DNA of 64,000 nt from Macrostomum lignano (GCA_002269645.1 NIVC01001952.1:62001-126000), one strand, 5' to 3'; shown: positions 4,595 to 41,692, numbered from the stretch's first letter. The notes: generated by a model not told the origin, from the sequence alone. Numbers and translations: made by a program.

Positions 4595-5050
4595 TCAAGC
4601 CAAGTATTCTTTGCGCTGCGAACCCGTTTCAACGTTCCACACTGGCGGCTGCGGCTGCAGTGCGGGTGCAGTCGTACCGCTCATCGGCCTGTAGATCGGC
4701 TGGTTACCCCGACGGTTAATCAGCGGATTGCCGCTTTGCTCGCGTCGCTGGCGCTCCTCCTTGGCCCTGTGCTGGCGGTGCCGCCGGACCAGAAAGAAAA
4801 TCACTACGCACAGTATAATAATAGCGATGACAACCACCAGTGGTATGACAACAACCATTTTGAGGTCGGCTGCGCCTAGAAAGTCCGGCGTATCGCAGAT
4901 GTCATTCTTCCAGCCCTCCAAGCACTGGCAGTAGAGCTTACCTGGCGGTATCTTTCTGCAATAGCCGCCTTCCAGGCAGTAGCTGTGCAGCTGGATGCGT
5001 AGCCTCTCACGCTCTTCCGCCGTGCAGTTGGTAACGCCATAGTCTGACAT
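4595..5050 (-). CDS. Single-pass membrane protein with one EGF-like domain (EGF/TGF-alpha/neuregulin-type ligand-like), 151 aa
   Basis: Six-Cys EGF spacing C-x15-C-x5-C-x9-C-x-C-x8-C (CTAE..YCLEGGYCRKIPPGKLYCQCLEGWKNDIC), a short stalk, TM helix VVVIPLVVVIAIIILCVVIFFLV, basic stop-transfer RRHRQHRAK and a cytoplasmic tail. Confidence 0.8.
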   Translation of the reverse strand: MSDYGVTNCTAEERERLRIQLHSYCLEGGYCRKIPPGKLYCQCLEGWKNDICDTPDFLGAADLKMVVVIPLVVVIAIIILCVVIFFLVRRHRQHRAKEERQRREQSGNPLINRRGNQPIYRPMSGTTAPALQPQPPVWNVETGSQRKEYLA

Positions 5051-8241: not shown

Positions 8242-9073
8242 TGCAACTCTATATTCTAATTGAGCAATATTTTAAAGAAGAAATCCTCACATGATAGTTT
8301 CGTTTATCAACTTGTCGAATTAAAAAGAGCCATAAATCTTCGTCATTAGTATGATCTGTATGTATTGCTCACAATGTAAAAAGAAATTTTGGTTACAGAA
8401 ATCTGTCATGCTGTTTACTGGCCATTGAACTCGTCCGACTCGTCTCGTCCGGTGGGCGAACTTTTTTCTTAGCATCATGCCCATTAAAATGCTCTCTGGC
8501 CTCTGTGGAGAGGCAGCCAACAAAGATGGTTAAAGAGATTCTCAGTCTTGCATTCCATTAGGCATCAATATTGCATCAGTCCACATGTATAGAGGCTAAA
8601 ATGTACAGTTAGAGCAGCTCATCATAGCAGTTCTCTGCTTTGTAGTTCACTCAGACCCACACGTTTGGATACATGATGCCTCGATTTCATACTCGAACCA
8701 GAAGCTGAATGTCGAGCTAAAAATAAAAGCAGAGTTGGCATTTCTGGTTCTGTCGAACGTCGATCGCAGTTAAGCCGACTTGCTCGTATAAGGGAATACA
8801 TTGTATAAGTTACTGTTTCAGGAGGATCTTCATGTGACTTAGCAGGCGAAAATAACTCTTAAGTCTTGGCCCGACACCAGGAGGGGGACCGCTAGTGACG
8901 GACTCTTCCCAGCGTTCTAGCTCAAGGGCGCGGTGAAAACCTACGTGTTAGGCGTTATAGGGTACGAGAAGGATCTTCAGTTGCCTTCACTAGTAAGCAG
9001 CCGTCAACAGATTTCAAGTGTAAATTCAACAATAAACATAAGACAGGAATATTGTGAGAAAGACTCTTCGCAG

Positions 9074-9841
<768 letters not shown>

Positions 9842-10051
9842 GGGTAGACTCATAATCGTCAAAGTATGATGAGCCTTGACATCTTCTCAATTATTTTGCC
9901 ATCGTTACATGTCTTGGCTAAAATACAGAGCTAAAAATATACACGTGAGGAAGTCAAGAAAATTTTATTTCTAAAATAGCTCGTACTCGTATCTCTTATA
10001 ATCCTCTACTAGCTATTCAATTGCTGAGTTGAAGCAGTGCACAGTTGCTAA

Positions 10052-11504: not shown

Positions 11505-14500
11505 TTAATGGGCCGGCCTCGCCGTATTCAGCAGAGCGAGGGCCTCGGCTGATAGGGCCGGCATGCGGCCGAGATCTTGAGCTGCTCTGCGTACTGCGGC
11601 CTCCAACGCCACGGCGTAATGCCGATATGGCATGAGCAAAGAGCGCGTTCTCGTGAAGGCTTCGTTGATGAGGGCGCGCCGCTCATCCTCAGCCATAGCC
11701 TTTAGTGCAATGGTTTGCGGTGTGGACCAGGCTGTTATTTCTCCGGTATACGCGGCTTTCAGCAGAATGGCCGCGATCATCTGCTTGATAGGCTCCCTGG
11801 CCGGCTGCGACTGGCTGCTACAGGCCGTCCCGCCACTGCTGGCCGGTGCCACCTTGCTAGGAGGGGGGCGGCTTCGCCCTCCCAGCCTTTCCAAGGCCGT
11901 CGGCCGTCCAGCGGGCTGCCAGTTGGCCGCGCGCTGCCGGGAGCGACTCCTCGATGGTCCTGCCGCTGCCCGGCCTCTGGCCGGGGGCTTCTCCAACAGC
12001 GCCGTCTTCCTAGGGGTTGGCTCTGTTTGAGGCCCGGCCACAGCCTGGACGTTCGTGTCGACTCGCAATAATGTACGGCGGGTAATGCCGATGGGCGCTG
12101 TAACCGGCGGGCCAGACGGTATTGGCGTTGGCTGGGTCTTCACCCGCCCTTCATCGGGACGCGGTGATGATGACTCGATCGGCTCGAAAGAGTCGTTCGA
12201 AGCTGACAGAGAGAGCTGCTGCTCTAGAGGCATCTCGTCCTCGCTCATGATGGTGCTGGAATGCGGAAAGAAGCGCCTTATTGAAGAGGCGAGCGCATCC
12301 CTGATCCTAGCAACATAAGATTTAGCTCTAGGATTCATTATTAGTCTATCTGGGGCTCGGCGGTCTCTCCGCGGGCGCTCAGCAACAGGCTGAGGGTCCG
12401 GGGGCACCGCTTCGGGCTGTTCTATGTCCCTAGGTGTTTCAGGTTGCTCATGAACAGCTACCCCATTTTTATTCATTTCAGGTTCGGCGACTTCTGGGAT
12501 CGCTGCTAGTGCTGCGGCCGGACGCAGAAAGTAGCGCGGAGCCCAGTCGTCATTATCGTCATCGAGCTCGTCAACGTCATCGGCGACTTCGCCGGTATTC
12601 TGAGAGGCAGTGGTTTCTATGGCAACGCGACGCTTACGCGGCGGCCCAGCACGGTGCTCAGCTGCCCGGCCAGCTGGCTCTGGATAGTCAGCTTGCGGAA
12701 CCGGTAGCATATTGCGACGGTGCACCACCAACTCCTCTCGACGAGCCCTAGGATTCCGGAGGCGAGGTCTGATCTTGTAGACAACTTCTCCTTTGCGCTC
12801 TACTACTTCATACACAGCCTTGCGCGGTCTGTGAAATTTCTGCGCTTCCCAAGACTGATCTAAGACTGGATTGTTCAGGAAGACTAGGTCACCCGGTGAG
12901 AGCTGCTTGGCCTTCGGGCGATTCTCATAATGTTCATCGCGAAGTTCTTGATGCAGCTTCACACGGTCCTGGGCTAACTGATTAGCTTCCTCTAGTCTCT
13001 TCTGGAAGTCTTGGACGTACGTTGGCAAGTCCGGATATTCAGGTGGGACCCGAAGCTCATTATCAATGGGCATCCGGATTCTCTTCCAAAGACCAAGAAG
13101 TAGGGCGTAAACCCTGTAACCGGGTGAACGCTAGATCGCAGAGCGATCATGCATGCTGGGAGGAAGGTGTCCCAATCCTGGTGATTCTTCTCCAGCAAGC
13201 ACGTGAGTACACTCTTGATTGTCTTGTTGAGATTTTCCACCTGGCCATTCGAACTAGGATTATACGGCGTTGTAGTCGTGTGCCTAATGCCGTACAGCTC
13301 ACAAAACTTCTTAAAGTCCTTTCCAGTGAAATTCGTTCCTTGGTCGGTGTGCAGCCACGCTGGTACACCGTACTCCGGAAACAATCTTTCCTGAAGAATC
13401 TTGACTACGGTCTTGGTCTTCTGGTTCCGCATAGGGAACGCAAAAGGGTATTTTGAAGTAGCATCGCATAGCGTCAGAATATAGCGGTGGCCAGCTCGCG
13501 AAGGCTGCGAGATTGGGCCGACAACGTCGCAGTGTAGCCGCCCCATCACTTCACAGACTGGGAAGCTCTGCACAGGCACGGCTTCGCGACGGCGAGTCTT
13601 GCTCTCCAGGCAAACTCGACATCGGGCCACGTAGGCCTTAACCGCTTTGCTCAAAGACGGCCTCCAAAACCTTTGTCTAACCCGAAGATAGGTCTTAGTT
13701 TCGCCAAGGTGTCCACTCAAGGGAGCATCATGGAGCTCTTTGAACACCTGGTCATCTAGACTCTTCGGCAGCACAATGCGCGGTGGACGGTCTGCTATGT
13801 CTTCATCGTAGACGAGCAGGTTGTCTACTAGCCGCAACATATCAAAGTAGCCTAGTAGGTTGCGCGTATCCCTACTAAGACGTAGTCGGGCGTCAAAGGA
13901 CGGCTTGGGCGAACTAGTCGCTAAAAGATTTCTGACGAACTCAATGTCCGGGTCCTTCTGCTGCTCGAGGAGCAGTTGGTCTCGCTTCAGAGGTTCGGAC
14001 AGAAAATCACTAAGCAGAACACGACAGCGTGGAGGAACATCCTCACTAACGCTACGGTTCGCTGATTCCGTTATTGAAGCAGATAATGGCCTTGCTGCGT
14101 CGTCGGTCCGGATTCCTGCGGTCAGGTCACCTGAGACACGAGGGCGAACAGCTTCTATGGCCGTAGGTGCGGTAGTGTGGCGTCCAACTGGGGCAAAGTC
14201 CACAGCTAAACCAGCAACCTTGGCTGCCCATTCTGAGCGGCGGTCCACTGAGGGACAACATGTCGCATCAGTCTGGCAGACAGCCTCGGACGCTCCAGCC
14301 GAACAACGGTTCACTGAGGAACAACATGTTGAGTCGGCAGAAACGGCCGCAATAACGGGTGTCGGACATCGGTCCACTGAGGGACAACATGATGAGCCGG
14401 CGACGGCAATACGAGATTCCTGCGAGGCAGAACTGCTGGATGTTACTTGGTCGGCGTCTTCGACTAATCCGAGGGCTGAGGGTACAGTGGCCTCATTTTC

Positions 14501-16876
14501 TGTCTGGTTGGGTGTCCGTGCTCCAGGACGACAGTCATCGAACTCCGGACCGTCCGGCTTTCTTGATAAGCTGTCTGCGTTCTGGTGCAAACTTCCCTTC
14601 CGATGAATGACAGCAAAGTCGAATTCACTTAGCCGTTCGACCCAACGACCCAAGATCCCTTCGGCTTCAGTCTGGCGAATGAGCCAAAGAAGAGCCCTGT
14701 GGTCTGTTCTAACCTCAAATCTCTTGCCGATTAAGTAGTAACGAAAGTGCCTCATCGAGTCAACAACGGCCAAAAGCTCACGCTTGGTGTTGTTGTACCT
14801 CGTTTCAGGCTCGCGCAATTTCCGACTAAAATAGGCAACAGGCCGCTCCGCACCATCGGATTGGCGCTGGCCTAAACAGGCGCCGATTCGGAAACCTGAG
14901 GCATCACAATCCAGGACGAAGACTGTGTCTGGGTCTGTGTTGTACTCTGGGTACGCGAGGACCTCAGTAGAGCACAGCTTCTTCTTGAGCTCATCGAAAG
15001 CTTTCGAGTGTTGCTCTGTCCATAGCCCCTTGAACCCAACAAGGTTCTTCCGAGTCAATTGATGCAACGGGGCAGCAATTTCGGCGTAATTCTTAACGAA
15101 TTTGGCATAGTAGTTACAGAGACCTAGAAAGCTCTGCAGCTGCTTGACTGTCTGAGGACGCGGCCAGTCTAGTATCTGCTGTACCTTGTCTTCATTAGTC
15201 CTAATGCCTCGTCTATCGACTACATGTCCGAGATAGTGCAACTCTGTCTTAAACAGATGGCATTTGCGTGGCTTTAGCTTAAGATTGGCTTCAATGAGCC
15301 GCCTGAACATTTCGCGAAGATGTTCGAGGTGCTCCTCGAAGGCAATACTATGAATGACAATGTCATCCATGTATCCTAAGCGAACTTAGTGATACCGTCT
15401 AGCAGCATATTGATGCATCGCTGGAAGGCTCCAGGGCTATCGCGAAGCCCCATAGGCAAGACGTTGAACTCAAACTGACCTCGATTGATCACTGAGAAGG
15501 CTGTGCGAAAACGATCCTCTTCACGCAACGGGATCTGATAGAACCCTTGAGCAAGATCCAAGCTGCTGAACCATTGAGATCCCCGGAGACATGCAAACGT
15601 CTCCTGGATAGATGGCAACGGATATGGTCGATATTCGCATCGTTCATTCAGCTCGCGATAGTCGTGGACTATGCGGACTGATTTATCCTTCTTAGGCACT
15701 ACTAAGATAGGAGAGCTGTAGCTTGAATAAGATGGCCTGATCAAGCCCTTCTCTAGCATCTCATCTAGCAGCTGATTGACCTGATCTTGCAGGTGCGGGG
15801 GACCCTGCGAGCTGGAATCCTAACTGGAGTCTCGTCCGCATGACGATCTGATGGGTCACCAGGTGAGTCAGACCGTGATCAAGAGTGTGCGTGGAGAACG
15901 CATTACGCGACTCTCTGATCAGCTCACGAACCTGGGACTTCTGGTCCTCCGTGATCGAATCGCCTATCTCTATCTCATTGATCCAATCGTCACTGGCTGA
16001 ATTGATGTTATCGTCTAGGTGCAACTTGCGCACAGGTGTTGCTTTCAGTTCTGGATAGTACTCGAGGTCTTGCGTCCGGAGCGGTGTGGCAAGGCCCACC
16101 AAGGCTCCTTTGGCTATATTAACTGGAAAGTTGTTAGGATTAACAACTTCCATGCAGCCTTTGCCTTCATGCATCGTTACCAATGCTGCAGATGCGCGGA
16201 CCTGGGAAAGCCCAGCGCGGAGTCCAGATCTGAGTGGTTCAACCACTGCTGGCACTCCATAATTCGATTCTTTGCCACGTGCCAGTTGCACAGATATGAG
16301 GCCAGAACTTCGAGCAGGAATCTGATGTTTTCCGGCAACATAGACTCTGCACGAGGTTGGCTCACGGCGCGTATAGCGCACGGGTACACAAGTACCAGTA
16401 GTGAGGGTAAGCATTCCTGTCTGGAACTCCAAGGTCCGACAGTGCTTCCTCATAAAATCAATGCCTAGGAGATTCTCCTGATCGCCGCTTACAATGTAGA
16501 ATTCAGCTTCAGCTGAGAAATCTCCGAAGACAACATCAAGCATAACCTTACCGGTTAGCTGTAATTCAGAACCATCATAGGTTAGAATACGATCGGAATA
16601 AGTAGGTGTAACTACGCATGCATGTGCAGTACTGCGCGATAACAATCGCCAAGTAGAAAGGCCCATCAGGTTCAGTCTGCTCCCGCTGTCGAGAAGCAAG
16701 GGAACCTGTTGGCCGAAAATAAGCGCAGTTACATAAGGATCAGCACCAGAGTTATATACATTATTTACAAAGGAAGAGTCTACGGTATCGCCAGACTCTC
16801 CAGACTGCTTTAGTGCGACTTCGGGGGTTGGCCCTGGAGAGGGTCCTGGTTGGCAACCCCCGCCCGGACGTTTCCC
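11505..16876 (-). CDS. pol: Gypsy Pol polyprotein (protease, RT, RNase H, integrase, long C-terminal extension), broken by four single-base deletions in this assembly
   Basis: Protease LLDSGS; RT SSPILVVPKKD, DYRELN, LDLAQGFYQI, MGLRDSP, GYMDD; RNase H LDCDAS/RELLAV/RTDH; integrase H-x7-H..CRVC, LHCDVVGP, HTDQGTNF, VENLN. Frame breaks at ~15841, 15797-15801, 15378-15379 and 13079-13080. Confidence 0.95.
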
Positions 16877-17775
16877 GGCTTCTGAGCCTTGAACTTAGGA
16901 CAGTCAGGCCTCTTGTGGCCTGGTTTACCGCACTCGTGGCACACAATGCCTTGCAGCCTATCTCTGACAGGTGCGGCTGGCGTCTGCTTGAGAAGCTGCT
17001 CAAGCATCTGCTGCTGCTTCTGCAGAACCTCATTCTGATGCCTGATTAGATTCTTAAGCTCATCGTCCTGTCGGGGAACCGTAGCTTTGTCCCCACCAAG
17101 GCTGCGACAGGGTGCGTCTTTGCTGCGGGCAGCAAGCTCACGCGCTGTCTCGATGCGCTTGAAGGCGAACTTGGCGTCCTGTAGAGTCTCTGGACGACCC
17201 CAGTACAGCCGTTCTCTCGCCTCAATTGTAGTTCTGACACCTTTCAGGAACTGATCAACAAGTTCTGATTCGAGCTGAGCTGGCAAGAGATAAGGATAAG
17301 CGAGTTCTCCGAGTTCGCGGAGAGCATCTGCAAACTCGTCAATGTCCTCGTTCTTGCGCTGAGTTCGGCAGCGGAAATCTTCTCGGAATTCCTGTGAGCC
17401 GCCTCTCTTTGAGAATCTCTCAATCAGCGCTTCCTTAAACTCTTCGTACTCCAGATGGTCTGGCAAGTTCAGGCGCAGGACCGAAGCATACGCCGTGTGC
17501 ACGTCAAGGTTGGCGAGCAACTCCGCCTTCCTGTGGCAGGCACGAATGTCTTCGGTATCGCAGCGAAGATCGAAGGCTTTGATCCACGTGCGGATGTCTT
17601 GGGATGGCGTGTATTTAGCCATCTTGACATGCTGCCTGACTTGGCCTATACCAAGCTGGCGCTCCAGTGCATCAGCGAGACGATCAAGACGTTCGCCTAG
17701 TACCGGTTCCTCAGCTCCTGCTCCAGCACCATCGTCAGGTGGTGCCATTGAAGCACGACTGCTGGCAATAGACAT
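16810..17775 (-). CDS. gag: Gypsy Gag with CCHC zinc knuckle, 321 aa
   Basis: Retrotransposon capsid-like region (FREDFRCRTQRKNEDIDEFADALRELG) and knuckle CHECGKPGHKRPDC. Starts 66 nt after the PBS. Confidence 0.95.
   Translation of the reverse strand: MSIASSRASMAPPDDGAGAGAEEPVLGERLDRLADALERQLGIGQVRQHVKMAKYTPSQDIRTWIKAFDLRCDTEDIRACHRKAELLANLDVHTAYASVLRLNLPDHLEYEEFKEALIERFSKRGGSQEFREDFRCRTQRKNEDIDEFADALRELGELAYPYLLPAQLESELVDQFLKGVRTTIEARERLYWGRPETLQDAKFAFKRIETARELAARSKDAPCRSLGGDKATVPRQDDELKNLIRHQNEVLQKQQQMLEQLLKQTPAAPVRDRLQGIVCHECGKPGHKRPDCPKFKAQKPGNVRAGVANQDPLQGQPPKSH
16822..16876 (-). promoter_or_regulatory. Programmed -1 ribosomal frameshift signal (gag to pol)
   Basis: Slippery heptamer G GGA AAC (plus 16870-16876) in the gag frame, a 7-nt spacer, then stem CGGGGGTTG...CAACCCCCG (16862-16822). 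The -1 frame is open from there into the protease. Confidence 0.85.
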
Positions 17776-20298: not shown

Positions 20299-20482
20299 AT
20301 GACCTCAAGTGCTCCGGTGAGTCTGGCAGCCGTAGCCGGTTGCCTGCTGCTGCTCCTGGCGGCAATCGCCTCGGCGGCATCGGCGGAGTCGCCACTGTGG
20401 CAGCCAGCGCGATGGGACAACTTTCAGTCCATCGACAGTGAACGAGCCGCTGCAGAGCCGGTGGTGGCCGAACTCCGCTCCG
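20299..20482 (+). CDS. Exon 1 of candidate neuropeptide precursor (signal peptide + propeptide)
   Basis: MTSSAPVSLAAVAGCLLLLLAAIASAASA is a typical signal peptide. GC-rich codons, ending at a phase-1 donor CCG|GTGAG. Confidence 0.6.
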
Positions 20483-21888
20483 GTGAGCTTGCGCCTACCT
20501 GTTGACAAAGATTCAGATTACTCGTGGGGATGATGATTGTGCAGATTTGTTGAGACTTGAGCACATCTGTCAATTATAATTTTACGGCGGCAACCGCTCT
20601 CTAATAAAGGAACTGGTCTCAAATTCAGACATCTTTGAAAATACCTTATATGGCATGCGCCTTCACTAAAAGGCGCCCCTCCCTCCTTCTCGAGGTTTGA
20701 AGTCACACACGCTGCGCAAATGAAAAATCACAATAATTGCTGCAAAGCATACATAATTGCTAATTTTCTTCTCCTATCTGTTGATAGCTCGGCAACTGAG
20801 AAAGCTGGCCATTGATACAGGCTTACACCGGAAATTGGCTCTACTACCTTGCAATTTTGGCCGCTGCAGAGGTTATAAAAAATACGAGTATGATGCACTT
20901 AAATGGCCTAGCACTAACAATACAAGCGTACCTGCGTGACTTAATTATTCATTTCTACGAGCTACGAGCTACGATTTGCATTTTAAGGCAAATAATCAGT
21001 AATTGAGTACTCGTATCCCACAAATCATTCACGAGTCTGTTGGCAGTCCGTTTGAAAGCATTCTATGTACTACAGTTGAAGGATTATGAGCTCGTAAGCC
21101 AATTAGAGAGATTAAAAATTGAGCTTAAGCGCACCAGCAAAGCATGCCGTATTCATAGCATGCAGAGCACCTTTTATATGCTTGGCATGATGGGCCTTGG
21201 TCTCAGCGCATCTGTACTGAAGCATCAATACTCGACTATTCAACTGCCTCTGCTGCACAGCCTTCAAAAATAGGCATTAATTGGGCTTACAATTGGCAGA
21301 GTACGGTGGCATGGAAATCGCATTCCTTTTATGGTATTCGGCAGGTCTAGTCTGCAATGACGCGTGCTCCGTCATGCTGACGCAGGCGCAGAAATGAAAG
21401 CATTTCTTTAAAAATTCAATTTTAATTTAAGATTAGACGCTAATGTGAATTTCATTCAGGATATCTTAGCGTTTTGTTTGAGACGTTCTTCGCTGAACAG
21501 CTACTGAATAATTCTACGTATTTTATTGATTGAATGAGACGCGTTCGTCGAATTAAAGCGTGTTTTTCCATTGCTGAGGAGACAAATTTAACATTGTTTC
21601 CCTTTCTCTCGATTGCTAACTCATACAATGGGGCATTTAATAAACTTAATTTGTTTCTCTATTCAGCTTCTTTTTAATTACCAGAGTGGGAATAAAATCG
21701 TTGGGCGTAACAAACCAATGCCGTTAACCAAGTCAACTGATGCTTGAGATAAGTGCTCAATTTTGGAAATCACAGTTTATTTGGTTGGTGGCATAGCTGG
21801 TTGAGGTCACCTGCTGCTCTCTATTGCCAAAGCCAGTAGCGCTGCTCAAGACTCAATCCCATGCTACCGTGCGAATTCGAACCCGCAG

Positions 21889-22133
21889 AGCGCCGCTCCG
21901 GCCACTGGCCGTTCCCGATGAGGCTCCGTCGGGTGGCCCAGGCGACCAGGCTGCGCAGACTCGCTGCTGAGCTGCGCGCCGCCATCGACGCCGCCGACAC
22001 CATTGACGAAGACGCCGAAGCAGACGTCGAGGAGCCTGCCGCTGGCGGACCGAGGATCGACCAGCCCGGCAGCTACCGCAGGCGGCTCAGCAAGCGCTGC
22101 CGGATCGGTAGGCTGTCCTGCCCCATCGGCTGA
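21889..22133 (+). CDS. Exon 2 of candidate neuropeptide precursor; C-terminal cyclic peptide CRIGRLSCPI(G)
   Basis: Acceptor CGCAG| at 21888 is in the phase matching exon 1 (joined ORF 142 aa). Acidic spacer, multiple RR/KR sites, terminal KR-C-x6-C-PIG-stop, and AATAAA at 22188. Confidence 0.65.
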
Positions 22134-23151
22134 AGCCTGCGCTGGTCAAAATGTTCGAAATACGCAAAGAGTTGAACTGCAACTGGGAAATAAACAGCCA
22201 TAGAATATTCTCTCGCATATACAGTGCATTCGCGACCAATCCTAAGTTCCAAAATTAATCCATGGTCTACTCAGAAAAATTGTTTGGCCCGCCATTGCCG
22301 CCCACCTGGAGAACTTTGAGACTGAAATAAAACACGAGACTAAGCGATGAACAGTCCCGCTGCTATTCATGCATATCCGCGCTTAACCACCTCGCAGTTT
22401 ATTCGTTTCTTTTACACTGGCGTTGCCGCATCGCTGGTGAACTTTTTCGGCTGTTGGTGCCGTCGTTAGAAAAACAAAATCCGCCTACATTTTCCCTGTG
22501 GGATAAGATCGGCTTTAATCCGATTTTAATCGCCCTTTATTGCTTGGCGGATTAGGAAAAACTGTCAATTCAATTGGAATCGAGTCCCTGTTGAGGCATG
22601 CGGCTTTAAGTATTAATAATATTCGGCGCAAGGCTTGAGAAGTGAAATTCTCGCTGCTAAAATTTGGGCCCGAAGTGGAGCAAAACGTTGGCCAAACAAA
22701 TCGCTGAGACAACACAGGTGACCCCAGTCTAACCGCATGTGCAGGCAGAGTATAGCCTAAGCTATCTTATCAATGAGCCCCTCCCTTTTCGATTGTACTT
22801 TATGCCAGCTCGCAAACTTGCGGCTCATTGTGGCTGCTTTTGGTTGTTCAAAATAGCAAGCGGTGTTTCATCGCAGAATTTTCCAGTACATGATAAAATA
22901 TTTTCTCTCAGCGACCTTGAATCTCTGTTTCATGGTTGGTCTGAGTCAGCTTTAGGCACACGTTTATCTTTTATTGCCAAAGCAAGGAAAAATTCGACTG
23001 CTAACTCTGACTCTGTTGTCATGGCAACGGATAACGATTTTTGAATCTGTTTATCTGGCGGTATTTACAGTATTTAAATCAAAGCATTAGAAATTAGTGG
23101 CCTGATCAAACCCCCTGCTGACAGCCTACCATTTAAGTTCTCGCTGCAACC

Positions 23152-24102
23152 ATGGCCTTGAGCTTTGCTCAGTTCGGACTTGTCCTGCTCTTTGTGGCCT
23201 CAGGCAGTGCTCAACTGGTTGAATTCTGCCCATTGCTGGGAGGCGTTAACTCGATCAATTGGAATGTCAACCAGGATGAAACCCTCGAAATTAACACTCT
23301 GCTGAGAGGAGTAAACAATTATGGGCCCAGCATGGACTGCACCTTTTCTATCGAGGCCAACGCCCCAGGTAGAATCATCGTCCGGGTGATTGAGAGCAAC
23401 CTGCAGTATTATGCGGCCTCCATAAGCATCCGCACGTACGCTCTTGGCGGCTATCTAGCAAGTTGGAGCCAGCTTACCTACGACAAGGATAGGGATGACA
23501 ACTTCATAGGCCTGACCAACAAGCTTTACATCAACTTTAATAGCCGCAGTTCGCCGCCTGGGAATGCCGCTGGCGTGCGCCTTTTGCTGACCTTCATGCG
23601 CGCAAACGGCTGCCCACCGCGCTGGACCCCAATGACGCTGGACGGCCGATCGCAGTGCGTCGGCGTTCCCACGCAAAATGTCTACAAGTTCGGAGCAGCT
23701 CAGCGCTACTGCAACCTTCAGCGCTCCAATTTGCTAATATCTGAGCGCGACAACATCGCCACAGTTCTTCAACGGGCCAACGCTGCCAATGTCTGGATCG
23801 GTATGACGGCGGAACCTAGCGGCTCTTACTCAACGTACCGTTGGATTAACAACATCCGCGTGGCAGCCAATCATAACGTCAGCTGCACCGGCGGTTGCCG
23901 ACCGGGCAGCACCACGCACCGGTGCGTGTACGCCAGGGACCCGCGCTCGCTGATCCAGATCGAGTGCGGCCAGTCGATCCGGCCCGCCTGCTTCATGCCG
24001 GTGGGCGGCACCGACACTTTCTATGCCGGCTCGTCCGCCGTCAGAGCCAGCGGCGCCCTGCTGGCTGGCGCGGTGCTTCTTCTCTGGGGTCTTCTGAACT
24101 AG
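23152..24102 (+). CDS. Secreted/GPI-anchored CUB-like + C-type lectin-like domain protein, 316 aa, intronless
   Basis: Signal peptide MALSFAQFGLVLLFVASGSA; CUB-like (MDCTFSIEA..RIIVRV..LYINFNS); CTLD (CPPRW..QC..AQRYC..VWIGM..YRW..RCV..EC..PAC); small-residue omega region plus hydrophobic C-terminus; AATAAA at ~24150. Confidence 0.85.
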   Translation: MALSFAQFGLVLLFVASGSAQLVEFCPLLGGVNSINWNVNQDETLEINTLLRGVNNYGPSMDCTFSIEANAPGRIIVRVIESNLQYYAASISIRTYALGGYLASWSQLTYDKDRDDNFIGLTNKLYINFNSRSSPPGNAAGVRLLLTFMRANGCPPRWTPMTLDGRSQCVGVPTQNVYKFGAAQRYCNLQRSNLLISERDNIATVLQRANAANVWIGMTAEPSGSYSTYRWINNIRVAANHNVSCTGGCRPGSTTHRCVYARDPRSLIQIECGQSIRPACFMPVGGTDTFYAGSSAVRASGALLAGAVLLLWGLLN

Positions 24103-25825
24103 AGACATCACTGTTCACGACTGTTCAGGGAGACTTCGATATGCGCCTTAATAAAGCAGTACACACTGATTCCCCAACACACAGATTTCCCCATCGTAGT
24201 GCAGCTTGTTGATTCCCAGTCATTCGATTTATTCGATCACTACAAAAGCCTCCAAATCTATCTAATACGAGCTAGACTATGCTTGAGTAATAAATTACTT
24301 GTGAAATAGTCTCTGGATAAGAAAATTGTTTTGCCAAATTAAAAAAGCATTCGACATTGTTCGAATTATTGCACAAGAATTCTGTTCACTTTGAACCGAG
24401 CAGAAAATTTGTGACTCCAATATAACAATTTTTGGATGGAGATTCGCAGAAATTCTGAGCATGAGAACTAAATATACTCAGGTTTAAGCTCGCCCAAGCC
24501 AAATAATAGTGGAAATGGCCTTCATTGATCGAATATTGCACTTAGCTCCTACAACATAAATATCCTATATATATTGAGTCAGTTTGTGTCATGACATTTT
24601 TGCTTGCATCCATGCTACATGCTTTCAATAAAATGCGAGTCTTACCTGCAGCAGATACTCGCAGATTGATTATTTAACTGTAAAACTGCTCCAGAAATTG
24701 CTTTTTAATATTGGAAAGCCTGTCGCGAGAATTGAGCTCAGCGCTTGTTGATGTGTAATGCCGTGTTGCTCACTTCAGATGCATTGATACCGAAGCTTAT
24801 GCATTTTGGGGTTCATTCGATTCAATGCAATACATTTTCTCAATATTCTGGCGAATTAATCAAGTGAATTCAATTCAAAAGCATTTCACATAATGGTATC
24901 GCAATGAAAATATGCAAGAATTTTGACAGATTATATTAAAGGGATAAATTGAAATTGAAAATATAGCAAAGCCAGGGACTACTAAAGTAGAAGGATGCAA
25001 CACGCGAAATCTATGGAAAATGTTTTGAAGGCCACTCTCTCTACGCCCAAAATAATACACTACGGAGATAAGAAGTTTTCATTTTTTCAGCACAAAAATT
25101 GTTATTTCTTTCGATAGGAGGCAGATCCAATGTTCATCTTTTGATATGTTGTGTCTTTCTTATAAATCTATTTATATTCATAAAGCTTTTCGTAGTCATT
25201 CTTAGCTAACTGTACCAAAATGTGCAACAGAGATGATAAAATAGATTCATAAAACCAAAGATTCGAACTGTGCCATGCATTTTTATGATTTTTAGGCACA
25301 GGACATATGCAATTGTGGCGCTCAAAAACTGCACTTAAACGGGAATTGAACTGCACTTTCCAGCTGCCCCTCACACATGGTAGAATGGGCGGATTCTATA
25401 TTTCTTGCAATTCTCGGGGATCTTTGTTCTACAGTCCTCATAATTGTTTCGCAGGCGAAGGTAAACTGTGCTGAGCTGGAGTTGCGCAATAATTCTGGAC
25501 TGGAAATTTCTAGGACATACGCGCCCTCGTACTTTTCGGTTGAGTAGTGCCATTTGAAGCTATAGTAAGAGACCTTACCGAATTAACCTTATATTTATAC
25601 TGTATCTGCAAAATACCCGAAAATCCAACAACTCTCGATGAATATTTGATGCACATGCATTTTACCTGGAGTTTTTTGCGCTTTCTTGAGTTCTGTGTAC
25701 CGGTACTTACAATATGATAATAAGTTTTTGATAAGAATTCCTTGATCGTGGATTAGTTCAACGGTGGTAAGTTTTTTTAATAAATTTATACTGCTTTTTA
25801 TTGGGAGGGGCAAGCTAGGGGTCAT

Positions 25826-26438
25826 GCAGACACTTCGGTGCCAGACAGTTCGGTGCCAGACAGTTCGGTGCCAGACAGTTCGGTGCCAGACAGTTCGGTG
25901 CCAGACACTTCGGTGCCAGACAGTTCGGTGCCAGACAGTTCGGTGCCAGACAGTTCGGTGCCAGACACTTCGGTGCCAGACAGTTCGGTGCCAGACAGTT
26001 CGGTGCCAGACAGTTCGGTGCCAGACAGTTCGGTGCCAGACAGTTCGGTGCCAGACAGTTCGGTGCCAGACAGTTCGGTGCCAGACAGTTCGGTGCCAGA
26101 CAGTTCGGTGCCAGACACTTCGGTGCCAGACAGTTCGGTGCCAGACAGTTCGGTGCCAGACACTTCGGTGCCAGACACTTCGGTGCCAGACAGTTCGGTG
26201 CCAGACACTTCGGTGCCAGACACTTCGGTGCCAGACACTTCGGTGCCAGACAGCTCGGTGCCAGACAGCTCGGTGCCAGACAGTTCGGTGCCACACAGTT
26301 CCGTGCCAGACAGTTCGGTGCCAGACACTTCGGTGCCAGACAGTTCGGTGCCAGACATTTCAGTGCCAGACACGTCGTTGGCAGTCATTTCGGTGCATGC
26401 AGACACTTCGGTGCCAGACATTTCAGTGCCAGACACTT
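25826..26438. repeat. 15-bp tandem repeat (GCCAGACA[G/C]TTCGGT), left part of the array split by the LINE
   Basis: About 40 units are directly visible. Confidence 0.97.
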
Positions 26439-26528
26439 ACTTACTTACTTACTACTGACGGGGGGCGCAGGCGCCGCGAATAGGCCGCGAGGCCCCTATC
26501 GCAACCCCAAGGTAAAAGAGCACAAGGA

Positions 26529-31651
<5,123 letters not shown>

Positions 31652-31881
31652 GCAATTGTGGAAGCTTTGCGAGAAGGTGGAGTTTCAGAGAATTTTTCCT
31701 TTTGCATGAATTTAAGTAGTATCTCAGTACCAGCCAAGAGACAGTACCAGTTTTAAAGCCCGCTGTGTGGCAAGCTAAAATATAGAAGAACCTTAAGAGG
31801 TCTGGAGCGTAAGAAGTACGCAATTATTTTGCAGCAATACTTGACGACTTGTGCAGCTTATTTTAAATTCAAGACATAACA

Positions 31882-32702
31882 ATGGCATCGCTGTCTCGAG
31901 AGAACCTGCGGGAGCTTCCCTGGACAGAAGACAAATTCGAGGCCTGGATCGAGCAGTTTGAAGCCGTCTGCAGGAGATCCGGCGTGAAGGATGAGAAGGA
32001 GGAAGGGTTTTCGCCCAAGGCCGACTTCTTCATAAGCCTCATGGTGAAACTGCCTACGACAAGCTGCGGAACCTGGTCGCTCCGGCGAAGCCAGAGAACA
32101 AGACCTTCAAATAATTGAAGAATGAAATTGAGAAGCATGTCGTGTCACAGAAGAAACTGGTTGTAGCTGAGCGCTACAAGTTGAACTTACTGCATGAAAC
32201 AAGATGAATACGAATCAGCGGCAGATTTTGAAAACAGGTTACGTGCTCAAGCTGACCGATGTCAATTCGGAGATTTTTTACAGGAAGCTTTGAGAGACAG
32301 ATTCGTGGCACGACTGCGCAGTGAGTCGGTGGTGAAAGAGCTGCTTATCAACCTGGAGCTGACGGTGGAGACTGCCACGGCGCAAGAGCAAGTAAGCAAG
32401 AGTGCCTTAAGCGCAATGGAAAGGTGGAAACAGTCAGTGCGACTAAGGGCAGAGTACGACAACAAAAAAGGGCCCAAGCTCAGGGACGCACTCCGCAAAG
32501 CTTGCAATTTCTGTATGAAGAGGCACCCGCCAAAGACATGCCCGCGTTTGGACCAAAATGTCGAAAGTGTGGGAAAATGAACCATTTTGAAGCTGCATGT
32601 AAGCTTAACAAGCCAGCTAGCTCACATGGAAGGATGGCATCCGGCTCCATCAAAGGAAAGCCGTCGATGCGAGTGTGCAGGAATCGAGGAGGATCAGGAT
32701 AA
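31882..32702 (+). pseudogene. Degenerate Mag-type Ty3/Gypsy gag remnant
   Basis: Stitching frames gives WIEQFE..FFISLMGETAYDKLRNLVAP..LVVAERYK..RLRAQADRCQFG..ALRDRFV..CNFC..H...CPAFGPKCRKCGKMNHFEAAC, with frameshifts and a stop. No pol or LTR seen. Confidence 0.75.
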
Positions 32703-35700
32703 ACCAGCCAAGGTTATCTTAAAGGGTGAAATATATATGGCTTTATATAGAAAATAAACATATGCGTACATGTACGTATGTATACGTGTACATTTTAGCT
32801 AATTCATAAACATATACATACATGTACATGCACGTATAAGCGCAGGCATATTTAAATGGACATAACATGTACATGTACGAGTAGGACCGATGCACGCGTC
32901 GCCACAGAAACAAAAGATTGCTGTTTACAATGCACGAGATCAGTACATGCATGCACCTAAAAATAAAGTTTTCCTACCTTTGTGAATTTTATTCGTCACA
33001 CAGGCTGTCTCTACCCAAGCAGCCACTGTAATAATAATAGTTAACTGTACTACAGTAAAGTTTTTGTCCTCTACCCTAAACTGAAAAAATCCTCGCTGTG
33101 CTTCTATTTATACATATGTGTGGCATACATTAAAAGTTACAAAGAGAAAAATACAAAATTGTTGCATTAATTAGCACGAAAAAGATACTCCTTGTCAATG
33201 ACAAAATCTGAATTGGATAATTCCAACGGTTGCATGCATTTTTAGTCAAATAAAGGTTTCGTACTAGCAATAATAAAATAGTTAATGATAAAGTTAATCC
33301 TGTTGAAGTCGAGTAAAACTTTTAATGTCAAATACAATAAAACAATTTTTTGACGAAATTGGTTTCTGACAGTTTTGTTTTGTTTTAACTAGTATTATTT
33401 ACTACAAGTTTAAATGCTGTTCTTCCATCAGATCCGGGGTAGTTCTCAAATTAAGGTCATGATGTTTTGGTACAGAAAAAAAAGTTTTTGAATAAAGTAA
33501 TTATTTTGCAAAAACGATTCTTTCGTCAATTTAATTAAAAAACTGCCGTTAAAACCACAAGAAACCAAATATTTAAGACGAAATCTAGCAATTTGTTATT
33601 TTTCGCAACGGAAAATAAAACGACCAAAAATTGTGAAATAATGCAAGTTTTCTTTTATTTTTTTATGAATTAGATACATCTTTTATTCTATGTTTACTAT
33701 TTAATAAGTATTATTTCAATAGAAAATGTTATTTTTAAATCAACATTTTGTTTTTTTCGTATAAATTGCTTGTATTTAAAATTATCGCGTAACAAGAAAC
33801 ACCCGAAATAATTGATATTGTACCACTCAAGAACTTAATTATTGTACTTAAACACCGAAATATGAAGCTTAAAATATACAAAACTGGTTTAGCTAAAAAT
33901 TAGGCTTGCAAAATATGTCTTTTAAAGCATTAAAAGTTTTTTGAATTAGAATATATATAGTAAACGAGCTAGGAAGCCATTTCTTTTAAAACCTAAAATG
34001 CATGTATCTTTTTTCGAACAGACTTGCGTTTTTAAAAAAAAATACTTCAGCAAGCATTTATATTCTGCAACATAGCTTTAATACTATTTTACTATTTTAC
34101 TATACTATTTTCTTATGTAATTAGGCTGCATAACTACTAAAAGAACAGCTTATAAATTTAAATTAAATACTTTGGTCTTGGTAAGTTAATTAGCCTATTA
34201 CAGACGTCTGACTCGGCAGCCACATGGATCACTGCAATTGCTCTGGCGAACCTCTGTAATCGATTCTGGCCCTGCACTAGCTGTAATGCTCGGTATACAA
34301 TTCGTCTCATTTGATAAATTACGTCGATGCCTGCAGAACTAACCACACCCAAAGGACCACTGCACATCTTAGCATTGTGGCACATACAATGATGCTGGTG
34401 TTCTGGCAGAGAAACAGGTAAAAGTGCAGCAAATGGCATTACATATCCGTCCGAGAGGTGTGCAGTTTACAGTGCTTTAGCCAATTGGGTCAGTAGAATT
34501 AAATCGATCACATTAGAATAAAAGTAGATGTTCGCTGTACATGTAACAAACCAATAGCAAGACACTATTGGATGTCTTTCCCTTCTACTGATGCTCGTAC
34601 ATCAGCTGGCTGTCTCCACAGGCCACAGCTCATCGCATTCTCTGTTAACCGCCGCTTCAGTGCTGTCAGCCGCACTTAACTGTGTCTGGCCTCGGTATAT
34701 AGAGTCAGTCCCAATGGAAAATCATCATCTAAAACATATCTAAAGCGTAATTGTCAATCGAAGAGTAATATAAAATATAGTATGTCTGTTATGGTACTGC
34801 CATGACTTATCTGTTAAACACTTCAAAAATTCGTGTGGCAGCACTCTCTGTAGAGATTTCATCTTTCTGTACCATATTTAATATTACATTGCCAGCATCA
34901 ATGGCAATTAAGTTTTTTCTTTTGTCTTTTTTCTTGTTAGTAGCTATATGCATCCAAAGGTGGAAAGTATCAACTGAATGTTTAAGTTGCTACATGTATA
35001 TCTTTAATGAATTGCAGAACATATGAGAATGAATTTAATGTTTCAAAAAAATTAATTTTTTGTGCTTCAGACAGCTAATTTCATTGATAATAAATCAGAT
35101 ACAAAATTGTTTTAATACTATTTCTTGACTAATCAAATCATGCAACTTTTTTATTATTCGTTACTCTTATTTTCTTTTCAGTTTCTACTACTCTCTTTCT
35201 TCTACTACTACTTTCTACTACTTTCTTCTACTCTTGTTTTGACTCATTATGTTTACTTGTAACTTACAATACAAATTTTAAATCAGTTGAAAAAATTGTG
35301 TGAAAACAACAAAAAACGACTGTTTTTAAGAGAAAAAAAGTCAATTTTATCTACATAAATCAAATTCTGTTTGTTCTGACTAACATATTGGGTGATCAAT
35401 AGCAAAAATTCATCTAAATTACGAGCGTACATAAAAAAACATCCAAAAAACCTAACAATGTGCTGAGAAAATTTTTTTTCATAACTAGAGACAAAAAAGT
35501 GGTACTTTTTCTCATCCCACAGATGAGGACTTTAAATTAAAATAACTTTGGTGCTACTTGCTTTGTTGTAGTCAGCGAAATCTCTCTTTGTTAGGTTAAT
35601 TTTGTGCTATTGAAAAAAACTTAAAATTGAATTTATTTAACTTTTCTTTCTTAATATAGAATGAAACTGCCTTAATTGATACTTTAGTGTTAGATATGAC

Positions 35701-38700
35701 TATCTTTCTTAAAAAACAGCAGAAAACGCAGCTATTAGCGTATTCTATCAACAGAACAAATTAATTAAAAGTGGATTTTTTTATCATTCATAATGTTACG
35801 TTTCTAGCAAAAATCGAAATAGCAACATCTGCTTTGCAATCGAAAGAGTTAAATGGGTTCTAGGTTGTGCTAACCAAAGTTATAAATAACATTTATCAAT
35901 TTTCTTCTTTAATAAGACCACGTGAACAGAATGTAGCTTCTCTAAAGTGGGTATTATAACTCGTGCGATAATAAAAATATATATCGAAAAATGAAATAGC
36001 GCACTCTGATGAGATTAACATCAAAAGTTCAATGTTAAAAAAGATTAAGACCCATGAGAGGCATATATTTTTTAAGTCCTTTTAGAGCTAAAATAAGAAA
36101 AGATTCAATATTTCAGGCTGATTTTCAAAAATATTTGTTTCACTGCTTACGACTAAACTTTGAGAACGACCCTCCGTTTTTATTGATTGTGATAATTTTT
36201 TACTAACTAGGGCCTAGATGTTTACTGAATAATGAATGCTGCATATATTTATTCAAGGATTCTGCCGCACACATTCGTCCAAGTCTCTTGTTTTAGAAAG
36301 AGTAGCAGCTTTATTAAGTGTTTTTTTTCAGTTACATTTGATTCTGTATAGTTTAATACAATTTATAGTAGGCCTAACCTCTTTCGCCGACTCGGGGCAG
36401 CTGTCCACTGGAAACGCCCGCACAGTCGTCGCTGGCCGTCTGCGGGAGGCCCGCTGAGTTTTAATTCCTGCTTTTTACACCCCTCTAAGCTTTTGTATGG
36501 TCTAGGGCTAGGCTAGAAAGTTGTCATAGTTATAAGAATTTTAGGCCTACCATTTTTTCTTTTTATTAGAGCCTATTTCTTTAATTTCATGCACATTTCT
36601 AGTTCTAGTAATAAACTTTTCACATAATGATCGACTTTACACTGTAGTTATAAAAATTTCTAGATTTCATGGTGCAATTGTCCCATAGGGCCTAATCAAA
36701 CAATGAATAAACTCTTGCTAGATGCCAATGGTGCATTGGTGCAACAATGGCCTAGGCTGCTTTCTGCCAATGGCAAAACTAGAAATTTGTTGAGAGGGGC
36801 AGATTCTAGAGTGTAAAGCCCTAGGGGGATACAAGGGTGGCTCTATACTTTGGCAAAAATGTGCTTGGTCCCCCTTTTGGCTTTTGATTTTTTTGGGTAC
36901 AACTATAAAGTTGTACTTCGTATAGTAGAACTATGTAGTTGTGGCTTTTTAAGCTACATAAAATGTGTTCAAATTAGGCAATCTTTTATTTTACTGCATT
37001 TAATAATTTAACCATTTTTTTATTTCAGAATATTAAGATAGTAGAAGGATAAAGATAAGTGTTTTTAAGTATTAGGTAAATCAATTAGTTAAGTAATAAT
37101 AAGCCACCCAGTATAAGAAGTTGCCAAACTCCTTTCTAGGAAAGAGCTGGCACCAGAGATACTCATTGAGATGGGTTTCAAACAGAGCTTCAGAAGTGCC
37201 ATGCATCGCCCAGAATTTTGCCTTGACATGGGCCTATGACTAGCAGCTATGTAGCGTGACATCAATGTTGCATAGCTCGGCTGCTGGTCTTAGATTGGCC
37301 TCGGGCACAATTGTAGTAGGAGCAGACTACAGAGGGCCTTCCAGCCATCAGTAAATTGGTTGAAATGAGAAAGAAAAGTAAAAAATTATTAAACATAGTA
37401 AAGTAAAAGATTGCCTCAAATTAAACATTTGAAAATGCAATTTTGATTAACAAATATTTATTTTTTATGATATGATTTAGAAGTCATATGACTTATATTA
37501 GGCCAATTAAACTCTATGCTAAAGATGACATGTTGCAAGACCTAAATGAGATAAGAGTTATGATAAGATTCTTGTTTTAGTAATCTTAGGTTTTTGACAA
37601 AAATTAGATAAGTCTAATAAGATTTAAGATTTTTAATTAAAAAAAATGGTGCCAAAGGAAAAAATTAAAAATCATATACATAGTCATAGGGTTAAAAAAT
37701 TATATAAAAATATAATCCATAGTCAGGAAGGTATCCTGTATGCCAGCCACAGTTTAAAACAATCTTTAACATAAATTTTTTTTTAAATGAAAAATGTTTG
37801 TATATACGCGCCGCATCTTGCACCTCCCCTCCTAGTCTAGGCATTATTCCTTGCGTACAGTGCATAAGCCTGGCATAAGTTTTTCATCATTTCATCATTT
37901 TTCCTCTGGCATAGCTCTAAGCATGAAATGGACTATGATAATTGCATCCCAGAAAAAAATGACCAATTTTTTGGTGTATACCAATATATGCTAAATACAT
38001 TCATTACCTTATAACAAAGCTTCAAATTGGTAATTTTTAACAGTACTATTAGACTAGTGCTTTTTGGTATTTAATTTCAATTAGATAAGTTAAAAACTCT
38101 AGATAATAATTATATTTGTATAATGTTTTATATAAATAAAGAACAAAAACAAAAGTTGTAAATTTTTGTTAAAACTTCAAATTGTTACCTTGTAAAAAAC
38201 ACAAAAAACTGTTTTACATTAAATTCTTATCAAATTGTACAATTATAATGATAGACAACTATTGTGACTATTATTGATAATATATTTTTTTAATTTTGGG
38301 TACATGTCATACAAAAATATTATAATATAAAATATATATATCAAAAGCCTAAAATCACTTTTTGTATATCAATACAAATGCAAAATTTCTTGAGTGTGCC
38401 TTAAAATTTTTTGGTATATATGCCTTCTTTCTGACTAAGGTATGCCAGAATTTTCTAGAGTGCATTAGCCTTTCATAGTTCATTGGCATACATATTTGAT
38501 GTGCTTGAATCTTAAAAAGTTGTATTTGGCATAGAAAAAGTGGTTTACAAAGCTATTTAAAATAGGTGCAAGTATCTTCTAGTTTCTATAATGAAAGGTA
38601 AAACATTTTGAAGAAAAAGGTAGTGGTTAAGATCTGACGAGAGTACAAATGAAAAAAATATTATTTGAGTATGATTGATAGTGCTATTTTATAAAATTTA

Positions 38701-41136
38701 GGTACTAAAACTTTGTGTAATTGCAAGATGTTGTAAAGAGTAATAGAGTAATAGACATGACACTTTTTTATTATAATGTACATGTAAACATCAAGTATAA
38801 TAACAAAAGGGTCCATGATTGTCATAACATAAAAAAGGTCCTTTATTGTCATAGTCATATATGCCCAACTTCAAAATTTTACCTGGCTATGTGACTTACT
38901 TTTTGACCAAAAATGTAACTTATATGAAAAAACCCTAAAGCAAATTTTATGTAATTTTGGATAAATAGAAAGAGTAACTATAACTATATTATTAAGGTTA
39001 AATGCTTCATAATCTAATTAGTATTATGTATATGTATTTTTGGATTAGCATTTTTGCAACTTACCTTGGCCAGACCTTTTGCCACCTGACCAAATTGGCC
39101 AGGTTGGCTGGGTGTTGGGCGTGTATGATCATAGTGCAAAAGAAAGGTTGCATAACTTAGAAATTTTGGTATACATGACAATCACATTTCCAATTGTTAG
39201 TGTACTTGGCATATACCTAAAATTTTGCCTAAAGAAACTGGCCTACACTGGATACCTTCTTGACAGTAGAATATTAAAAAAGATAATATATATAATTTTT
39301 TTTAAAATTGATATAAAATTTCTTCATAATCTTTTCTTTTGGCTTTATAAGATTTATTATCACAATATTCTGCAAAAACAATTTTTCATTTTTTAATTTA
39401 ATAATTGCAGTGGTTGCTAGTTAAATTGGTAATAAGCCATTTTGGTGTCAGATTTCATCTAGTTTGTGATAGTCTCAGTTTATTTGGTGACATCATTGTT
39501 TGTATATGCAATTATGTATAAAATTATAATTTATAGTTTTGAGTTTAGTTTTTGAATTGAAAGTTATTATTGATATATAGTTTGCTTTGTTTTTCTCCTT
39601 TCATTTCTGCCTATGAAATAGTTTAAAAAGCAAATAAAAATGCAATTCTTGTTATCCTGCCATCCTATTCAGCCAAATGTGATAGCTTTCTAAGTCATTG
39701 TTAGTATAGATTTGCTGCCAATAAATATAGATGTCCTCTGTGCACCAGCAATTGACTTCTTTCAGCTAATCAAGTGCTTTTGATATATTGACATAGATCT
39801 ACTTGTCTCTGGTTAGCAAATTGATTAGCAAAGGCTTATAGGTAAAGAAAAGTGAATACAATGCAGTTGCTGGGCAAGAAGGCAAAGGCATCAATTTTCA
39901 AATGAAGTGCTATGTGCCTTTGTCTTGATTGTATGAAAGTTGAAGACTGAAAGACTCTATTCATACATGCGCAACAGTTGGCCAATCCGGCTGACCGATT
40001 TGGCGGCCAACCAAGGAAGTTGCAAAAATGCCCACTCAAAAAAATGCAAAAGGAGTAGTACTAAATAGCTGACGAGGCATTTTGGCTTAATAAGACAGTC
40101 TTAGTTACTCCTGCCGTTTACCCAAAGTTGCGTTAATTTTGCTTTAGTGTTTTTTACATGTAAGTCGCATTTTTGGCCAAAAACTATGTCGCATTTTTGT
40201 TAAAACTAAGTTGCATGGCTGACTGAATTTTGGAGGTTGAGCACGTATGACAGTCTATGCTATATAGCTTGCATCCAATGGAAGTTCCAGCCCATGGCAT
40301 GCACCTATGGAAACTTTTGCTAGATTGCATTCAATATAGCTTTCTCAAAATATAGTACAAACAAAGTAAATCCAGTAAACAAAGAATTGGTTTTTAAGAC
40401 AATGTGCTTTTTTATTGTTTTCCATAAACTATTTTTGCTCCTTGCTTATTGGGGGCCCCAAAAGGGGCACTAGATTGCTAGTCATGAACTAAGCATGGCT
40501 CTAGATCATCAATATCAATATCGTTTCAATCTTGTTGATCCTGCTGATAGTCACAATGCATATCATGCTATTTTTCAAAATGAATGATTATACAACATGC
40601 ATAAAAGAATTTAATTTATATGGGTATTAGCCAAATAAGTAAAAATGAAGTATCTATAATAGTTAAGTAGATTTAGTAATTTAGAGCTAGCATGTTTATA
40701 TGCTTATAATACAAACAGATAATTACATTAGTTATCATTTTAATATTATTTTAATATTTTGATTAAACCTATACCTATAGGAAGCTAAAGAAATTGTTCA
40801 TCTATGTTAGAATTTATTTTCTTATAAAACTTGTATGTCAGTATCTTATTTACCAATTTAAACAAGTATATGATATTCAAAAAAATAATTTCATTTGATT
40901 AAATCTTTTTATTGGTTATAAAAAGCTAAAAACAATTATGAGTATAAATACTCATATTCAAAATAAAAGTTTTTGTGCTTTATTTATATTGAATATATTT
41001 GTAACAATATTTTGATATGAAAGACTTCAACTTAATATATGCCATATTATATAATATATGCAAATTTTGTAAAAAGGCTTTAACTTACTCTAAGTTCTTT
41101 TCATGTGTGCTATTGCTTTTATTGTATTTTTAAATG

Positions 41137-41404
41137 CCCATTGAAAACAAGGGTTAATCTTGAAAGTAAATGGACAAAAAAACTTTTGGTTCGTTGGTTA
41201 TTTTACTGCAGTTTAACTCTCAAAAGGCAAATTTACATTAATTAACTACACACTTTGTAGGCTAATTTTGGTTAACAAACTTGTAAATTTATGTAAATTA
41301 ACCCTCCATAAATTAAAGTAATGTTTATTTACCTAAAATCACATTAATTAACCTTCCAGCTATTAGTTAATTAAACCCCAATATTAAACCTTGTTTTCAA
41401 TGGG
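41137..41404. mobile_element. Possible small AT-rich MITE
   Basis: 24-bp terminal inverted repeat with 2 mismatches (CCCATTGAAAACAAGG[G/T]TTAAT). TTAA lies 3 nt outside each end. Confidence 0.45.
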
Positions 41405-41692
41405 TGATTAACATAACTAGATAGCCTTTTATAAATAGACATTAGGCTATTGTCTATACTGTCACAATAATACACTTTATCATATATTATTAATTAGTGA
41501 CTAAAATGAGGGTTTATTATTTTGTTATTGAATATAATACAAAAATTTTTTATTCTTGTAATCTTGTTCCATCTTTAAAATTATTAATAGGATTTTTAAA
41601 ATAACATTTTTCTTTCAATCTGCAAGGACTACTTCCAGTAGTATAGCAATTCTAAAGCACATTTTTCGCCAAAAAAATTAACAATTCATGTC

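Follow-up and report, generated by a model that had tools for sequence, protein, structure and literature searches.

At positions 20299-22133 of the window (the whole 64-kb stretch of Macrostomum lignano DNA analysed here) lies a two-exon gene on the plus strand. Its joined coding sequence of 429 nt runs from the ATG at 20299 to a TGA stop codon at 22131-22133 and translates into 142 amino acids. Coding exon 1 (20299..20482, 184 nt, GC 66%) encodes residues 1-61 and the first base of codon 62, and coding exon 2 (21889..22133, 245 nt, GC 71%) encodes residues 62-142 and the stop codon. The two exons are separated by a phase 1 intron of 1406 nt (20483..21888, GTGAGC...CGCAG, GC 42%) with a donor site CCG/GTGAGC after 20482 and an acceptor site ...CCCGCAG/A before 21889. 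By tblastn, exon 1 corresponds to residues 1-61 at 100% identity and exon 2 to residues 61-142. An in-frame stop codon is found 40 codons upstream of the ATG at 20299, with no ATG between them, and read-through of exon 1 past the donor site reaches a stop after seven codons. An AATAAA polyadenylation signal is located 56 nt past the stop codon (22189..22194, plus strand), and the GC3 of the coding sequence is 78%, similar to the 70% of the neighbouring gene. The contrast in GC content between exons and intron, the high GC3 and the polyadenylation signal support a real gene. No convincing open reading frame (ORF) was found inside the 1406-nt intron. An unspliced ORF of 90 amino acids from an ATG at 21861, which lacks the signal peptide, was dropped because the transcript-derived spliced model was preferred.

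The 142-residue product matches exactly PAA62312.1, deposited in GenBank as a "hypothetical protein" of M. lignano (BOX15_Mlig011401g1), and exon 1 is identical to the start of that entry. The same model is present in three database entries, PAA62312.1, PAA55320.1 (g2) and A0A1I8JG77. The variants relative to PAA62312.1 all fall in the signal peptide (V7A and L17V in PAA55320.1; V7A only in A0A1I8JG77), and the UniProt name given to entries of this 142-residue protein is "Secreted protein". The sole source of the Mlig_3_7 GenBank annotation was a genome-guided RNA-seq transcriptome (StringTie/TACO, TBONE and TransDecoder; PMC5730564). Since the annotation was made only from RNA-seq transcripts, a spliced transcript carrying the 20482/21889 junction was assembled. 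Thus, the junction is backed by RNA, indirectly, through the transcript-derived annotation, and the gene is a real, previously deposited and uncharacterised orphan of M. lignano. No searchable literature text mentions the gene identifier or contains the peptide strings. The identifier is also absent from the searchable supplements of M. lignano studies, including lists of reproduction genes and of germline and neoblast genes, and a literature search found no neuronal single-cell resource for this species.

The product has the layout of a secreted precursor. The predicted signal peptide spans residues 1-29, MTSSAPVSLAAVAGCLLLLLAAIASAASA (20299..20385, plus strand), with putative cleavage after A-S-A at positions -3 to -1. 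Kyte-Doolittle means over 11 residues are 2.4-2.8 across residues 7-26 and are followed by the small residues A-S-A, and residues 8-28 form a helix in the AF2 model. The signal peptide was called from hydropathy, from the AxA site recognised by eye and from the UniProt name. The full order of parts reads MTSSAPVSLAAVAGCLLLLLAAIASAASA/ESPLW...ERR-SGHWPFPM-RLRR-VAQAT-RLRR-39-residue acidic spacer-RRR-LS-KR-CRIGRLSCPIG-stop, and it includes five basic motifs predicted to serve as cleavage sites. A pro-segment of 33 residues lies between the signal peptide and the ERR motif. The segment SGHWPFPM (residues 65-72; 21897..21920, plus strand) sits between ERR and RLRR. It has no Gly for amidation and a calculated [M+H]+ of 958.424, and its release by processing would make it a possible by-product or second, non-amidated peptide. 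The acidic spacer, LAAELRAAIDAADTIDEDAEADVEEPAAGGPRIDQPGSY, occupies 39 residues between RLRR and RRR (21960..22076, plus strand) and is modelled by AF2 as a low-confidence helix followed by coil. It is followed by the double basic motif RRR-LS-KR (residues 125-131; 22077..22097, plus strand), at which cleavage would be expected from the specificity of convertases for KR and RR.

The last 11 residues, CRIGRLSCPIG (residues 132-142; 22098..22130, plus strand), are preceded by KR and followed directly by the stop codon after Gly, the arrangement of a convertase site and an amidation signal. The predicted product is CRIGRLSCPI-NH2, with a Cys132-Cys139 disulfide closing an eight-residue ring, a calculated monoisotopic mass of 1113.590 and an [M+2H]2+ of 557.802. 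Other than Cys15, which belongs to the signal peptide, the precursor has no cysteines but these two, seven residues apart, immediately after KR and near the terminal Gly. The precursor combines a predicted N-terminal signal peptide with the absence of any transmembrane or globular domain. The AF2 model (pLDDT 58.6, pTM 0.25) contains isolated helices only and no fold, which fits a processed pro-protein and not a folded domain.

An initial annotation had proposed this gene from the DNA alone as the source of a novel cyclic, amidated neuropeptide. Its start codon, its junction at 20482/21889 and its stop codon are exact and equal the transcript-derived GenBank model. The signal peptide that it placed at the N-terminus is borne out by the hydrophobic segment, the AxA site and the UniProt name "Secreted protein". 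The arrangement that it described is likewise the generic grammar of prohormones: signal peptide, pro-region, basic sites, acidic spacer, KR, Cys ring and terminal Gly. The word novel holds for the peptide, which has never been described in the searchable literature, but not for the protein, which had already been deposited as hypothetical or secreted.

How far this arrangement departs from chance was assessed by composition-preserving shuffles of the protein. Arg accounts for 19 of the 142 residues (13%, rising to 17% past the signal peptide) and Ala for 27. The observed number of dibasic pairs was reached in 6.6% of shuffles (P≈0.07), so that in an Arg-rich protein the count of "cleavage sites" is not remarkable. 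A C-terminus with a dibasic site, two Cys 4-12 residues apart and Gly as the last residue was obtained in two of 100,000 shuffles (2e-5), a statistic that is post hoc. A six-frame scan of the 64-kb window finds the pattern [KR]R..C-x4-10-C..G-stop a single time, at the CRIGRLSCPIG site. Although recognised post hoc, this C-terminal pattern is the standard grammar of a disulfide-cyclised, amidated peptide.

Relatives of the protein were confined to M. lignano. A word-indexed search of 5.8 billion proteins (E≤10) returned the M. lignano cluster only, and phmmer, run exhaustively against 1.84 billion representatives, recovered the same cluster and no homolog outside M. lignano, both in collections where other Macrostomum species are not represented by transcriptomes. 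Phmmer also returned P0004 and P0005, two giant repeat proteins of bacteria, which were rejected as compositional; their matches cover residues 3-57 and are summed weak alignments to Ala/Ser/Val-rich "DWDSFQSV" repeats. A Pfam search at E≤10 gave no domain in the 142-residue protein, and in particular no Somatostatin, Pro-MCH or neurophysin. JGI metagenome contigs contained no match to the degenerate DNA pattern back-translated from CRIGRLSCPIG-stop. The relatives found are thus two M. lignano copies only, at 99% identity. A second locus, on NIVC01002771.1 (L001), is about 98% identical to the window over 7.3 kb, with the intron and flanks also about 98-99% identical, and it shares the downstream neighbour. 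The coding sequences differ by three substitutions: two are non-synonymous and fall in the signal peptide, the third is synonymous and lies in the ring (T>C at 22109, the sole difference in 22098..22130). Four substitutions and a 12-bp indel distinguish the introns. Because the copies are too young and near-identical throughout, their comparison is uninformative on selection.

Taken together, the layout makes the gene a reasonable candidate precursor of a new lineage-specific cyclic peptide. The chain would enter the endoplasmic reticulum by way of its signal peptide (residues 1-29), which would then be removed, and Cys132 and Cys139 would form their disulfide there. Along the regulated secretory pathway, prohormone convertases of the subtilisin-like type would cut after R63R64, RLRR76, RLRR85, RRR127 and K130R131. 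A carboxypeptidase would trim the basic residues, and peptidylglycine alpha-amidating monooxygenase would consume Gly142 as the amide donor. Such processing would yield as its main product CRIGRLSCPI-NH2, a cationic cyclic decapeptide that would probably act through a receptor as an intercellular signal, either a neuropeptide or a peptide hormone. That this orphan, prohormone-like gene yields CRIGRLSCPI-NH2 is probably correct, and neuropeptide status for the product is plausible. The fuller statement, that Mlig011401.g1 is a prepropeptide gene whose product is processed and used as a signalling peptide, is put forward tentatively, at a little under an even chance.

A true processed neuropeptide of this kind would found a cyclic amidated family specific to macrostomorphans or to flatworms, with its own receptor, or, less likely, represent an extremely derived flatworm form of allatostatin-C (AstC) or somatostatin (SST). 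This more specific claim is possible but doubtful. Most flatworm neuropeptide precursor families are described as only slightly similar to the families known from other bilaterians. Lineage-specific flatworm prohormones, such as the spp and npp genes of Schmidtea and the npp families of parasitic flatworms, are likewise small secreted precursors with dibasic sites, an amidated product (predicted in the present case) and no homolog outside their lineage. Flatworms have been shown to make amidated, convertase-processed peptides, and mass spectrometry, pc2 RNAi and in situ hybridisation have all served to validate prohormones in planarians (PMC2953531). The Schmidtea and parasitic-flatworm families stand on such validation or on conservation between species, whereas the M. 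lignano gene is a candidate put forward from its sequence and its transcript-derived annotation.

The same cyclic peptide could also be the product of non-neuronal secretory cells, such as epidermal, pharyngeal, adhesive or prostate glands, and be released outside the animal or into the mate in a defensive, antimicrobial or reproductive role. We consider such an origin unlikely, though several features of the precursor would suit it. The acidic spacer contains DEDAEADVEE directly before the cationic C-terminal peptide. The motifs RLRR and RRR are furin-type sites for which no neuroendocrine pathway is needed, and since the RLRR sites are furin-like, processing is equally possible in non-neuronal secretory cells. 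Rings of similar size are found among host-defence peptides, and tigerinins, bactenecin and contryphans are small ring peptides of this kind. The precursors of frog-skin peptides (tigerinins, Rana-box peptides) and of cone-snail contryphans share with the M. lignano precursor a signal peptide, an acidic pro-region, KR, a short C-terminal ring with a single disulfide and a Gly donor. The frog-skin and cone-snail rings differ from the M. lignano one in coming from unrelated taxa, in spanning x5 and x7 residues and in showing no sequence similarity to it. They are also exocrine products, whereas the M. lignano peptide may be neural or glandular. Orphan status is itself typical of fast-evolving genes for secreted effectors and reproductive proteins, and reproduction-related genes of Macrostomum have been shown to evolve fast (PMC7336406). 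Against a glandular origin stands the absence of the gene identifier from the searchable supplements of the reproduction-gene and germline/neoblast studies mentioned above, although these files may be incomplete. In addition, ten residues with two Arg make a weak membrane-active antimicrobial, and an amidated terminus is most typical of neuroendocrine peptides.

Alternatively, the gene could encode a small secreted orphan protein, rich in Ala and Arg, that is left uncut at these sites. Its "prohormone grammar" would then arise from GC-rich codon usage, with its many Arg codons, and the CxxxxxxCPIG tail would be a coincidence. The Arg and Ala content and the ease with which shuffles match the dibasic pairs agree with such a protein, and conservation is seen only between near-identical M. 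lignano copies. The long helices of the AF2 model also cross the RLRR sites, albeit at low confidence. What speaks for processing is the rarity by chance of the whole C-terminal arrangement in the shuffles, and the placement of the only two cysteines outside the signal peptide, seven residues apart, directly after KR and near the terminal Gly. The lack of a fold in AF2 and of a Pfam domain also speaks against an uncut protein, which is judged decidedly unlikely.

The generic precursor layout does not by itself establish family membership, and the processed peptide was compared with known ring peptides. AstC rings share the core C-(Y/F/A)-F-N-(P/A)-(I/V)-(S/T)-C-(F/Y), and somatostatin carries FWK. 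AstC, somatostatin, urotensin-II and MCH precursors all have a signal peptide, a long pro-region and a single ring peptide at the C-terminus after KR, as does the M. lignano precursor. Descent as a highly derived flatworm ortholog of the AstC/somatostatin peptides, acting on a rhodopsin-gamma GPCR of the AstC/SST type, would account for a lone peptide at the extreme C-terminus after a dibasic site, for the equal Cys-x6-Cys spacing and for the Ser ahead of the second Cys. AstC is widespread among lophotrochozoans (PMC8557429), and a literature search found no statement on an AstC peptide in flatworms. This descent is nevertheless very improbable, as only one of the six ring residues of RIGRLS (the Ser) is common with AstC. 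Both the (Y/F)-F-N-(P/A)-(I/V) core and the aromatic residue after the second Cys are missing. The first Cys has no N-terminal extension ahead of it, and the tail behind the ring is P-I-NH2 where AstC has a single aromatic residue. Neither the Pfam search for somatostatin nor the searches of 5.8e9 and 1.84e9 proteins gave a match to an AstC/SST precursor. Of the likeness to AstC, somatostatin and MCH that the initial annotation had pointed out, the C-terminal single-ring layout, the x6 spacing and the Ser are retained. Kinship with these families is not, given the one shared ring residue of six and the absence of Pfam somatostatin and MCH domains.

A comparable partial likeness is found with the arthropod CCHamides, which are amidated at the C-terminus and likewise have Cys-x6-Cys with Ser in front of the second Cys. 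Peptides of the CCHamide/EP type differ in lying directly after the signal peptide, in their G-H-S-C core and in a tail of four residues. The M. lignano peptide is C-terminal in its precursor, and its ring identity to this type is again one of six.

The initial annotation had also noted that the CPIG tail mimics isotocin and mesotocin. These are CYI(S/Q)NCPIG-NH2, and the flatworm member of the vasopressin/oxytocin (VP/OT) family is platytocin. A -C-P-I-G ending and an amidation signal are indeed encoded in M. lignano, but Gly is the last residue. With Gly142 as the amide donor under the PAM mechanism, the mature tail would be CPI-NH2 and not CPIG-NH2, one residue shorter than in these hormones, and the likeness shrinks accordingly. 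A VP/OT-type paralogue that has lost its neurophysin is effectively refuted: apart from the encoded CPIG, three of four defining features fail, as the ring encloses six residues and not four, the peptide lies at the C-terminus (132-142) and not directly after the signal peptide, and there is no neurophysin in the Pfam search of a protein with two Cys only outside its signal peptide. Furthermore, M. lignano is reported to have bona fide VP/vasotocin precursors encoded by other genes (PAA85176.1 and others; PMC8896804). Kinship with the VP/OT family is not supported.

M. lignano is a transgenic flatworm model whose peptidergic signalling is almost uncharted. If validated, a cyclic amidated peptide such as CRIGRLSCPI-NH2 would give GPCR deorphanisation a further ligand and would mark a neuronal or glandular cell type. 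Functional tests would be cheap, since ring peptides are stable and easily synthesised. The general understanding of peptide precursors would be left unchanged; prohormones confined to one lineage are frequent among flatworms, and the model of this gene was already public.

Several other features were observed in the window. On the plus strand, 1 kb downstream of the gene, a single-exon ORF of 316 amino acids (23152-24102) encodes a protein with a signal peptide, an N-terminal region weakly resembling CUB and a C-type lectin domain that exceeds the Pfam gathering score (Lectin_C, E=4.9e-5). Its C-terminus is hydrophobic and could be a GPI or transmembrane anchor. The same lectin ORF is also found beside the paralogous copy (NIVC01002771.1, L001 7867-8817). 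On the minus strand, a Ty3/Gypsy-type LTR retrotransposon (11505-17775) lies 2.5 kb upstream of the gene. Its ORFs are long and look largely intact, with a gag ORF carrying a zinc knuckle (16810-17775, minus strand), a protease-region ORF (15761-16699, minus strand) and an RT-RNaseH-integrase ORF (12992-15370, minus strand). Since the paralogous locus is homologous to the window only from 19106 onwards, this element may be specific to the window copy.

A non-LTR (LINE-like) retrotransposon at 26529-31619 on the minus strand has an ORF of 813 amino acids with RT and RNase H, and further ORFs upstream. Arrays of a 15-bp minisatellite that translate as VWHR(T/S) or CLAP(N/K) border the element on either side (25595-26483 and about 31120-31760), and the same minisatellite is present at the paralogous locus at about 90% identity. 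A 10-kb block at 32000-42000 is AT-rich (GC 28-36% versus 47-57% in its flanks) and is without long ORFs. Long tandem-repeat arrays were found at 8955-9890, 45065-45595, 52813-53543, 53933-54950 and 56664-57221. They comprise a tetranucleotide type with strong GC skew (8-10 kb), a CTG/AGC-type trinucleotide array of about 1 kb (at about 54 kb) and minisatellites, and all of them yield long spurious ORFs in several frames. On the minus strand at 4595-5050, an ORF of 151 amino acids contains cysteines in an EGF-like pattern (CLEGGYC...CQCLEGWKNDIC), and after them a transmembrane segment and then a basic tail on the cytoplasmic side. In Pfam it matches TMEM154 and Sema4F_C weakly and below threshold, and it may encode a small membrane-anchored EGF-like ligand or be one exon of a larger gene.
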